A DNA stretch of 63,705 bases, counting the filler, from Octopus bimaculoides (lineage: Eukaryota): the NCBI RefSeq assembly GCF_001194135.2. It is 3 parts of 3 records of this genome, joined end to end, with 100 filler letters (N's around TTAATTAATTAA, not from the genome) between each part and the next. Parts side by side here need not be neighbours in the genome. Positions count along the whole stretch, not along the records: positions 21,932 to 53,381 come from NC_069001.1; 2 more parts are not named here. One strand, written 5' to 3'. The notes under the pieces are model-generated. The model searched no databases. It was not told the origin of the DNA and was given only the letters and a program-made list of their open reading frames with translations. The translations under genes were made by a program, and so were the position numbers. Shown in pieces: positions 41,136 through 43,109 of the stretch (its first letter is position 1; each line of letters begins with the position of its first letter).

Positions 41136-41964
41136 TTCCCTCTTTCTATCTCTCTCTCATTCAGTGTGTATGTAATTTGTGTAAGTCGTTTGTTTTGTTA
41201 GTCTAATCATGACTTAGTCATGTTTATAATCTTCCTCTTAGTGAAAAACTACTAGTCTAAGGCTACTTATTTCTGTTGTTTAAGCACAGAGAAAGACCAC
41301 TCTTAGATTCCTATGTTGTTGTTAAACCCCCAGACCAGCCCTCCACAAAAAAAAAAAAAAAATCTGTGATCAAAAGCCATTCCGTTCATGACCGTCCTCT
41401 ACGAAAAGGTTCATCTAAAATTATGTTATTCAATCCTTTAGCATAGAGGTTACTCTTTCAATGTGATGTACTCACTGTGTTTTGAATTCATCTTATAACT
41501 TTGAGATTTTGATGATGCGATTTAGTTTTAGAATGACATTGTAGAGTAGGTACGATGGGCCAGATGTGGCCAGTTTGAACTTAAAGAAAAAGAATAGTTG
41601 GGTGGCTTGATTAGGCTGGTTTAAATGCTAAAGGACTAATATATCCTTGTGCGGTTACTGGGATACACAGCTATTATTTCTGGCAACCATGTGATTGTAG
41701 TGCAGTTGCTGGGATATTTGGCTGTTATTTCTAGCAGCTGAGTGACCTTATAGAAGTTACCTCCACATGTGTGCTGTATAAGTGTAAAATTCTATCCAAG
41801 GCACATTTGCCTTTTCATTCTTTCTATGATCAATTAATCTATTAGTATTTAAACCAGTTATAACTGGGCCCAGATATTCTACCAGTTTTATGTTCAAACT
41901 GGCCAGATCCAACCTCTCATACCTACCCTACAATGTCATTCTATAAATGAACTGTCACATCATT

Positions 41965-42097
41965 TACATTATCTACATTTGACGGATATTTGTCCTCATC
42001 TTGTTTGTTGTTAACACAACGTTTCGGCTGATATACCCTCCAGCCTTTCTTGGGGGAAATTTCAAACCTGGGTTCTCATTCCTAAGATATTTTTCAA

Positions 42098-42133
<36 letters not shown>

Positions 42134-42419
42134 AGTCACTGCCTGGAATCGAACTTGGAATCTTGGGGTTAATAGCCCGCGCTCTTAACCACTATGCCAT
42201 ATGCCCACAGGCAGTGACCTGAATAATAATAATAATAAATAATAATAATAACATCGAAAAATACCTTAGGAATGAGAACCCAGGTTCGAAATTTCCCCAA
42301 GACACCTGATGAAGGCTGGAGGGTATATCAGCCGAAACGTTGTGTTGACAACAAACAAGATGAGGACAAATATCCGTCAAATGTAAATAATGTACATAAT
42401 TCCTCATCTCTTAAATATA
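41965..42419. mobile_element. tRNA-headed, hammerhead-bearing retroelement inserted as an inverted pair with a 16-bp TSD
   Basis: TSD GAACTGTCACATCATT at 41949-41964 and 42420-42435; minus unit with A box (42189-42199) and B box (42145-42154); plus unit 42208-42419. Confidence 0.9.
42301..42346 (+). ncRNA. Intact-looking minimal type I hammerhead ribozyme
   Basis: Stem I GACAC/GTGTT; CTGATGA 42306-42312; stem II GGCTG/CAGCC; GAAA 42334-42337; ACGT palindromic helix III; predicted GUU cleavage after 42341. Confidence 0.8.
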
Positions 42420-43109
42420 GAACTGTCACATCATTGAAGTCTTGAAGATACAAGACAATTTATGGTTACTTCAAAACAATGTGCCTAAAGGAACATTACC
42501 TTTCTTGGAATAATTTGAATGCTAAAGGGTTTTAGCATAATTCTGGATCATTTGAACCCTTTTGATACCAACCTGCCCAAGCCACTTTTGCTTCTATGAT
42601 ACAAACTTCATTTTTAAAGAGGTCCAAATCAGAACCTTCTTTCTTGGTAGGCCATTTAGCTTAATGGTAGAGTACTCAACTGGTATCTGAGGGGTGCAGG
42701 TTCAAATCTCATGGCTGTCTACTGGCAACTTTTCTTTTTCTTCTCACAATCATGAGGTATTGAGTTCACTTCCTAGACTGGGCTGTGTCATATTCTTGAA
42801 CAAGATGTGGGGGACAATAAGACAAAAACGGTACCCAACTCATCTAAAGGCAGTGTATTTATATCCTAATGCCATTCAACAACCAGATTATTTTGATACA
42901 TTTCTCTTCTTGTTATTGAATCTATACCATTGTTGCTTTTACCTGTCCTCCCACCACTACCACTGCATCTACTTAAAATATCTACTTCCACTACCACCCA
43001 CCCTTTGACTCATACTGCTACTATTACCCCTTGCTACCCCTTCTTACCCCCATCAATTCTGGTTTGCTTTTCTTCTTCCCCTTTCCTTTCTACTTGACTT
43101 ACCTTGTTT

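Follow-up and report, generated by a model that had tools for sequence, protein, structure and literature searches.

A tRNA-headed element with a Penelope-type hammerhead motif in Octopus bimaculoides, probably a SINE mobilised by Penelope-like elements

Short interspersed nuclear elements (SINEs) are defined as dependent on long interspersed nuclear elements (LINEs). In a 63,705-nt stretch of three joined parts of the Octopus bimaculoides genome (assembly GCF_001194135.2; this whole stretch is referred to as the window), an initial annotation had proposed at 41949-42435 a SINE-like element with a tRNA-like head for RNA polymerase III (Pol III), which carries a hammerhead ribozyme of the type known from Penelope-like elements and is inserted as an inverted pair. 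This raises the question of which machinery mobilised the element and what the ribozyme contributes. Window positions 21932-53381 (NC_069001.1), comprising approximately 29 kb of sequence and 2484 N, were searched together with related loci. We consider it probable that the element belongs to a Pol III SINE superfamily of coleoid cephalopods, whose 3' module is derived from, and mobilised by, a Penelope-like element. Each element is composed of a degenerate tRNA-like head, a family-specific body, and a common 3' module of approximately 140 nt, which extends from the hammerhead to ...AAATATAGAAC.

The borders of the insertion are given by the 16-bp sequence GAACTGTCACATCATT, which occurs exactly twice, at 41949-41964 and 42420-42435, as an exact direct repeat with a distance of 471 bp, and which encloses an insert of 455 bp (41965-42419). 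Joined via one GAACTGTCACATCATT, the flanks give an uninterrupted alignment with three paralogues of an older repeat, which are located in this piece at 46230-46470 (+), 45910-45710 (-), and 41660-41470 (-) and in which the 16-bp sequence is single-copy. Because joining the flanks restores this older repeat, the 16-bp duplication is host sequence. The interrupted host is a piggyBac-like miniature inverted-repeat transposable element (MITE) on the plus strand (41843-42529, approximate boundaries based on the paralogue alignment and the terminal inverted repeats). Its terminal inverted repeats are CCCTTTAGCATTyAAA and TTTGAATGCTAAAGGG, the right one being situated at 42514-42529, and TTAA adjoins the terminal repeat in one paralogue. 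Both the target-site duplication and the splitting of an older MITE were thus recovered as initially annotated. Since the 3' terminus of the family, ...AAATATAGAAC, coincides with the first 4 nt of the 16-bp repeat, these may belong to the element and represent a priming microhomology, in which case the true duplication would comprise 12-16 bp.

The insert (insertion A) consists of a head-bearing copy on the minus strand, running from 42207 to 41965, and a 5'-truncated inverted partner on the plus strand (42208-42419), which are arranged head-to-head and overlap at their junction by a 4-nt microhomology (CAGG/CCTG). The two arms are 95-97% complementary (41959-42047/42312-42400, 42053-42113/42238-42298, and 42115-42145/42208-42238). 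In the minus copy, which scores 274 bits with nhmmer, the tRNA-like head (42135-42206) contains the A box TGGCATAGTGG at 42189-42199, matching TRGCNNAGTGG in 11 of 11 positions, and the B box AGTTCGATTCC at 42145-42155 with 10 of 11 matches; the boxes are 33 nt apart, which is a tRNA-like spacing. An (AAT)10 linker (42102-42131) connects the head to the body, and the tail extends approximately 137 nt beyond the linker to 41965. Head, boxes, and linker were therefore correctly predicted, with the difference that the tail, given as approximately 200 bp, measures about 137-190 nt. This copy lacks the last approximately 25 nt of the family and bears a 9-nt deletion (net 8 nt), which takes out CACCUGAUG with the CUGAUGA box. 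A hammerhead remnant (42013-42054) with helix II, GAAA, ACGU, and the 3' strand of helix I is retained.

The plus partner retains only the final 11 nt of the head, continues through linker and tail, and has a complete 3' end. Only this arm ends in the 3'-terminal segment conserved in the family, CATAATTCCTCATCTCTTAAATATA plus GAAC (42395-42419). It recurs at the copy ends of two related loci, L002 and L004, and as the peptide HNSSSxKYRT in the unrelated ORFs P0001, P0007, P0009, and P0016 (the loci and P0001 are described below); due to this conservation in independent copies, an interpretation of the 25-nt right-end segment as duplicated target was ruled out. The intact ribozyme motif of insertion A is found only on the promoter-less plus arm. 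The inverted pair of the initial annotation is head-to-head, with the intact motif on its plus arm only. Due to the fact that the promoter arm lacks ribozyme core and 3' terminus and the ribozyme arm lacks the promoter, insertion A is a dead copy. A match of the insert to the Rfam family MIR5048 (59.6 bits compared to a gathering score of 160) reflects the long hairpin only.

A second, older insertion (insertion B, approximately 39296-39691) likewise comprises a head-bearing minus copy (39296-39572, low-coordinate boundary approximate; hammerhead-like motif at 39380-39425) head-to-head with a 5'-truncated plus copy of 112 nt (39580-39691; motif at 39593-39638). Its divergence is approximately 18% from insertion A and 9-19% between its own arms. 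On both arms CUGAUGA-A-GGCUGG...GAAAC is intact, ACGU is decayed at its CpG, and helix I contains an A.G mismatch. A recognisable target duplication was looked for at insertion B and not found. The truncation point of the plus partner differs between the insertions, with 112 nt retained in B and 212 nt in A, and thus fits 5' truncation by a reverse transcriptase rather than a fixed terminal inverted repeat.

The motif on the plus arm of insertion A, at 42301-42346, reads GACAC-CUGAUGA-A-GGCUGG-AGGGUAUA-UCAGCC-GAAA-CG-U-U-GUGUU with a loop of 8 nt, and constitutes the complete minimal type I hammerhead that had been annotated there. The core C3 U4 G5 A6 N7 G8 A9 ... G12 A13 A14 A15.1 ... U16.1 H17 is complete; helix I comprises 5 bp, helix II comprises 6 bp, a single unpaired A follows A9, and helix III is reduced to the palindrome ACGU. 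Cleavage is predicted between 42341 and 42342, the cleavage-site base U17 being 42341. A descriptor custom-written for the minimal architecture detected no other site than this one across the 29-kb piece, and 300 random sequences (Markov-1, 29 kb each) gave no hit. With a relaxed descriptor, solely the homologous site of insertion B was added, compared to 0.14 expected sites. The intended fold of helices I and II amounts to -12.0 kcal/mol versus -12.6 kcal/mol for the minimum free energy structure, which retains both helices (z-score -1.8).

Relatives were found by means of the translated sense-strand tail, which is open for 57 codons. This open reading frame (ORF) matches the O. bimaculoides entry A0A0L8FV75 (P0001) with 87% identity. 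A profile of the tail ORFs of both insertions and A0A0L8FV75 retrieved 170 cluster representatives among 1.84 billion proteins, and a word-indexed query of three core variants retrieved 1878 proteins. Relatives originate from Logan contigs SRR11869384-94, RefSeq entry XP_052825882.1 (O. bimaculoides), ENA ERZ21867824, and GCA_052426985.1. The conserved residues of these spurious ORFs are those of the ribozyme: P-D/E-E-G-W encodes C-CUGANGA-A-GGC-UGG, and P-K-R-C encodes CC-GAAA-CGU-UGU. From the antisense into the sense arm run 16 of the 149 representative ORFs, and 13 contain tandem units. An interpretation of ORFs starting with MANGIRTGDP... as read-through of an antisense tRNA arm was ruled out by locus L007, in which a sense head is situated farther upstream. 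For the antisense ORF of the element no homologue was found. Exact-pattern scans with the ribozyme loop and the tail gave no match in viral contigs or GTDB genomes, and the match L001 in JGI metagenomes was rejected as one chance bacterial match.

At the DNA level, several families with different arrangements were distinguished. L002/L003 and L012 are of the octopus type and form inverted head-to-head pairs with other truncation points, and L005, L006, and L011 are single decayed copies cut by contig ends, of which L006 starts in the 3' end of the head and continues with linker and tail. L004 consists of a truncated minus arm, a 130-nt spacer, and a head-bearing plus copy. L007 represents a different family, in which a tRNA-like head in sense orientation (TGGCGTAACGG, GGTTCGATTCT) is followed by a body of 125 nt, the hammerhead ACAC-CUGAAGA-A-GGCCGG-loop8-UCGGCC-GAAA-CGUU-GUGG, and a tail of 85 nt. 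In L008 and L009, a full minus copy is located head-to-head with a truncated plus copy, followed by two further 129-nt tandem units; the complex of L008 is flanked by ATAACAGGTTTT and ATAACAGTTTTT, which form a 12-nt repeat mismatched at one position. A fourth family, L010, occurs as three tandem units. Altogether, an inverted 5'-truncated partner was observed in insertions A and B, L002, L004, L008, L009, and L012, and tandem units of 120-129 nt in L008, L009, and L010; the window contains no tandem units. One arm lacks the terminal 25-55 nt present on the other in A, B, L008, and L009, while in L004 both arms have the full 3' end. Convincing target duplications were looked for at L004 and L007 and not found.

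The homology between the window and L007 (E 1.7e-11) is confined to the module, and the upstream head and body of the window element do not align to the L007-type copy. This occurrence of a common module behind different heads in several families resembles the LINE-derived tails common to SINE families.

For the ribozyme, 18 distinct 46-nt segments were aligned. Standard pairs are formed in 87% of the helix cells, compared to 14-48% with slid partners. At the fourth pair of helix II, 10 copies have C-G, 6 have U-A, and 2 have U.G, so that pairing is retained in every copy. At the third pair of helix I, 13 copies have C-G, and the fourth family has U-A. The unpaired A13 is invariant in 18 of 18 copies, and ACGU is present in 12 of 18, the others differing at its CpG. 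The motif, whose conservation across copies was among the initially proposed checks, is conserved in the relatives: a perfect core is kept by 12 of 17 distinct copies, and the failures are single decay mutations, e.g., G5A in L005 and G12A in L006. Of 46 positions, 9 differ when the octopus ribozyme is compared with that of L007, none of them in the core; the differences concern N7, loop 2, the compensatory pair, and outer helix I.

Both window insertions, which are approximately 18% apart, have head, linker, and tail combined in one unit, and so do relatives of another genome. The composite tRNA-headed SINE of the initial annotation is therefore supported by independent copies. A TTTT stretch is absent from the sense strand in 9 of 9 copies and is present on every antisense strand. 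Based on this absence and on the A and B boxes, the element would be transcribed by Pol III.

Which machinery inserts the element? The minimal hammerheads of Penelope-like elements combine a short helix I (3-5 bp) with an unpaired base on the 5' side of helix II and a helix III reduced to the palindromic ACGU, which could pair between two molecules; the motifs were also reported to occur in pairs, on opposite strands and at distances of 100-700 bp (PMC4209133). The window motif resembles the hammerheads of Penelope pseudo-long terminal repeats (pseudo-LTRs) in its core, short helix I, unpaired base, palindromic ACGU, and opposite-strand pairs. It differs in that it is preceded by a tRNA-like Pol III head, in that the element, with a length of 240-350 nt, has no ORF for reverse transcriptase or endonuclease, and in its helix II of 6 bp compared to the 7-8 bp reported for schistosome families. 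The insertion structures point in the same direction. Heavy 5' truncation, partial tandems, an inverted 5'-truncated partner, an extension of 30-40 bp at one end, and a target duplication of variable length were described as traits of Penelope insertions (PMC8557442), and according to Craig et al. 2021 (PMC8557442), LINE integration is not observed to produce such complex structures. All of these traits are present in the window or its relatives, partial tandems in the relatives only. From the insertion traits of Craig et al. and the Penelope pseudo-LTR type of the ribozyme we infer that the module was derived from a Penelope-like element and that mobilisation occurs in trans.

The following course of events is conceivable. 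Pol III would transcribe the unit from its head. The 3' module would be a copy of the 3' end (pseudo-LTR) of a Penelope-like element and would be recognised in trans by the reverse transcriptase and GIY-YIG endonuclease of the latter. Target-primed reverse transcription would begin with a microhomology of few bases, here GAAC, and copying of a second template would start at the opposite side of the staggered break or follow a template jump, as with Penelope-like elements. The outcome would be an inverted 5'-truncated partner, tandem partial units, or both, within a single target duplication of 12-16 bp. The hammerhead was most likely inherited along with the module, and its role would be whatever role it has in Penelope-like elements.

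Self-processing of the transcript, as initially proposed, finds less support in the copies. Every copy examined spans the predicted cleavage site, and no truncated copy or tandem unit starts at this site; tandem units begin 6-8 nt upstream of CUGA. Copies that span the site imply that the reverse-transcribed templates were uncleaved RNA. This copy structure argues against obligatory self-processing and suggests that cleavage is not required before reverse transcription.

Several observations weigh against a Penelope-dependent SINE superfamily. Rfam hammerhead families (RF00163, RF00008, and others) gave no match at the gathering score or at E<=10 in searches of 801 nt and 76 nt, nor did they match in 66 kb of related loci; the check with RF00163 proposed for this motif thus had a negative outcome. 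Such a miss is to be expected for motifs without helix III, yet it is a failed test. The covariation is thin, since it comprises two pairs and probably two events, and its score of 0.193 was reached by 21 of 500 shuffles. For stems I and II, in which covariation was to be tested, the two compensatory pairs and the degree of pairing amount to modest support. Along the element, identity between insertions A and B is uniform (0.78-0.89), so that the ribozyme is not specially conserved there. The head scores 10.6 bits (E 9.5) with the Rfam tRNA model, covering positions 8-63 without the acceptor stem, the head of L007 does not match this model, and no tRNA was called in the head by ARAGORN. Because relatives were found via the ribozyme-spanning ORF, the sample is biased to copies in which this stretch is open. 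Finally, an autonomous element with reverse transcriptase, GIY-YIG endonuclease, and the same module was found neither in the window nor in approximately 80 kb of related loci. Mobilisation by a Penelope-type reverse transcriptase, as initially claimed, is therefore backed by the hammerhead traits and the insertion architecture, but its autonomous GIY-YIG partner, which was likewise to be searched for, did not turn up in these sequences.

An ordinary tRNA SINE dependent on a LINE of the RTE, CR1, or Dong-R4 type, in which the hammerhead is a relic or a chance motif and the inverted pairs arise by twin priming or hairpin formation, is unlikely, despite the richness of octopus genomes in LINE-dependent SINEs (PMC8967140, PMC13282606). 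This explanation gains from the failure of the Rfam models to recognise either ribozyme or head, from the missing Penelope partner, and from a LINE reverse transcriptase fragment in L010. Against it stands a motif that is complete, statistically unexpected, and conserved with compensatory changes across families. Moreover, twin priming yields non-overlapping inverted segments of a single RNA, whereas both arms of the insertions repeat the same 3' region, and the inverted or tandem architecture was observed in both window insertions as well as in L002, L004, L008, L009, L010, and L012. Neither a poly(A) stretch nor a terminal microsatellite is present, and no copy of the module adjoins the LINE fragment. 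This C-terminal fragment (L010, 948-1427 on the plus strand; ..ILLYGCTTWTLT..KKLDGNYTRMLR..) is not Penelope-like.

The element shares with LINE-dependent cephalopod SINEs the tRNA-derived head with A and B boxes, the composite build, and the high copy number in octopus. It differs in its module, which has no LINE-type terminal repeat and contains a hammerhead, and in its insertion as inverted or tandem multimers. Ohshima & Okada 1994 reportedly described the octopus OK/OR elements, and Akasaki 2010 the Ceph-SINEs. The 23-bp Ceph/RTE motif CCTCCAGCTATGGGTTAAATAGT of Ceph-SINEs (PMC5786205) is absent from the window element, with no match in the window allowing up to 4 substitutions. In the loci of ERZ21867824, five matches were found (L004 10957-10979 and 15319-15341; L007 8347-8369 and 11871-11893; L008 10841-10863), all of them outside the hammerhead SINE copies, and an identity of the conserved module with the Ceph domain was ruled out. 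Since it carries the 23-nt motif, ERZ21867824 probably stems from a decapodiform cephalopod, i.e., a squid, cuttlefish, or bobtail squid.

Slightly less probable still is a small retrozyme, i.e., a unit of 120-130 nt composed of hammerhead and tail, which would be transcribed in tandem, cut as a dimer, and circularised, with the tRNA head as a later addition and the window copy as a by-product. The head-less tandem arrays of L008, L009, and L010, whose units of 120-129 nt each contain a hammerhead, are in agreement with this idea, and metazoan non-LTR retrozymes share this layout and are thought to be Penelope-dependent (PMC7229834, 10.64898/2026.07.22.740005). Like the present element, the latter are non-autonomous, bear a hammerhead, and have a low GC content, with target duplications >4 bp and presumed use of the Penelope machinery, and L008-L010 form short tandem arrays as well (PMC7229834; Li, Clavereau & Pollet 2026). 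Retrozymes differ in that they lack a tRNA-like head, possess canonical type I hammerheads, and are defined by an organisation in tandem repeats of 150-450 bp and by abundant circular RNAs. By comparison, the window contains an inverted pair without tandem units, its ribozyme is of the minimal, weakly active Penelope type rather than canonical type I, and the tandem units of the relatives, 120-129 nt in length, start upstream of CUGA, as with template jumps, and not at the cut at which a circle would be opened.

A foldback element or MITE with long terminal inverted repeats, or an assembly-artefact palindrome, is suggested by the almost perfect 190-bp hairpin of the insert and by the gapped draft assembly with its 2484 N, but is disfavoured as very improbable, since arm lengths (112 to 212 nt) and junctions vary between insertions as with 5' truncation by a reverse transcriptase, the 16-bp target duplication is far above the lengths made by cut-and-paste transposons, the arms have diverged by 4-15% with indel differences and hence are not assembly duplicates, and independent assemblies and read sets show this architecture as well.

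Thus, a Pol III SINE superfamily mobilised by Penelope-like elements is the reading that we retain. Lunse, Weinberg & Breaker 2017 are said to have dealt, alongside Cervera & de la Pena 2014, with the minimal type I hammerheads of Penelope pseudo-LTRs. SINE-like Sm-alpha and Sj-alpha elements of Schistosoma were reportedly described by Ferbeyre et al. 1998 and Laha et al. 2000. By description, to which the comparison is confined, Sm-alpha/Sj-alpha (PMC6765202) are likewise short non-coding retroposons with a Pol III promoter and a hammerhead, but they occur in another phylum, mostly in tandem, with a canonical type I ribozyme that cleaves efficiently. The Chlamys elements, e.g., MRC1 of Chlamydomonas (PMC8557442), are also non-autonomous; what they have in common with autonomous Penelope-like elements is only the 3' end, and their insertion gives rise to pseudo-LTRs and to multiple copies. 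They belong to the green lineage, have no tRNA head, and most of them lack a hammerhead.

Hammerheads were hence already known from Penelope pseudo-LTRs, schistosome Pol III SINE-like elements, and head-less retrozymes (PMC4209133, PMC6765202, PMC7229834, 10.64898/2026.07.22.740005), and dispersed minimal hammerheads were previously taken as truncated Penelope copies. In our literature search, no paper was found that links a cephalopod SINE, or any tRNA-headed SINE, to a Penelope-type hammerhead or to Penelope-type insertion. In recent repeat annotations of octopus, SINE families are left unclassified by the hundreds, e.g., 893 in O. vulgaris (PMC13282606), and ribozymes are not mentioned. The SINE itself may already have a name, for instance among the octopus SINEs of 1994 or in Repbase/Dfam.

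Further observations concern the relatives and the surroundings of the insertions. In L008 (10300-10575) and L009 (431-691), AAACAC-CUGAAGA is connected to the 3' terminus ...TTTAGACAAC where one tandem unit meets the next. Full copies likewise have GACAA ahead of the ribozyme, which represents a microhomology that could guide a template jump. In two independent pairs, the head-bearing arm has lost the CUGANGA box, by 9 nt in the region of 42048-42052 in insertion A and by 19 nt at approximately 9800 in L008, and the partner arm retains it in both; this could be due to chance, to the instability of long palindromes, or to the ribozyme. RefSeq protein XP_052825882.1 (P0024, GCA_001194135.2), annotated with 94 aa as 'dystrobrevin beta isoform X1', contains GEGWRVYQPKCCVNNKQDEDKYPSK, a translation of the SINE hammerhead and tail. 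Its gene spans 132 kb, and the SINE is either exonised or misannotated.

The piece at 21932-53381 is of draft quality with many gaps and has a high density of microsatellites of the types (TA)n, (CA)n, and (GA)n. ORFs of protein-coding appearance were not seen across it. The four MITE copies of approximately 220 bp (41470-41660, 41843-42529, 45710-45910, and 46230-46470) form two neighbouring pairs in inverted orientation. Another tRNA-like head, with 31.8 bits in the Rfam tRNA model and thus above the gathering score, is located 230 bp downstream of the insert at 42650-42717 (+); the repeat following it (42743-42805) recurs at 35532-35596 and 34875-34939, and both probably represent another SINE family. 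A different repeat family ends in (AAT)n (22157-22560 and 33026-33200, both on the minus strand). A simple SINE may have contributed its old 3' tail as the internal (AAT)n of the hammerhead SINE, the Penelope-type module having been added onto it.

It is tempting to speculate about the purpose of the module. We regard as doubtful, and on balance improbable, the idea that the palindromic helix III pairs two element RNAs into a dimeric hammerhead, and that this RNA dimer rather than cleavage is the function of the module and gives rise to inverted and tandem double insertions. If true, two templates would be presented to both sides of the staggered break, which would explain this hitherto unexplained hallmark of Penelope-like elements. 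Every insertion would then seed a hairpin of 100-200 bp in cephalopod transcripts, and these hairpins would be a possible source of double-stranded RNA for the unusually heavy adenosine-to-inosine editing of cephalopods. Speculatively, the inverted repeats built by insertion might in any case be a systematic source of hairpin RNA in these animals.

If it holds true, a Penelope-dependent SINE superfamily would extend the dependence of SINEs to a third class of retrotransposons. It would help to explain the thousands of 'dispersed' minimal hammerheads in animal genomes as well as part of the 'unclassified SINE' fraction of octopus genomes, which is very large. Being short, abundant, and divided into several families, these elements would provide a natural comparative series for the purpose of the Penelope hammerhead.

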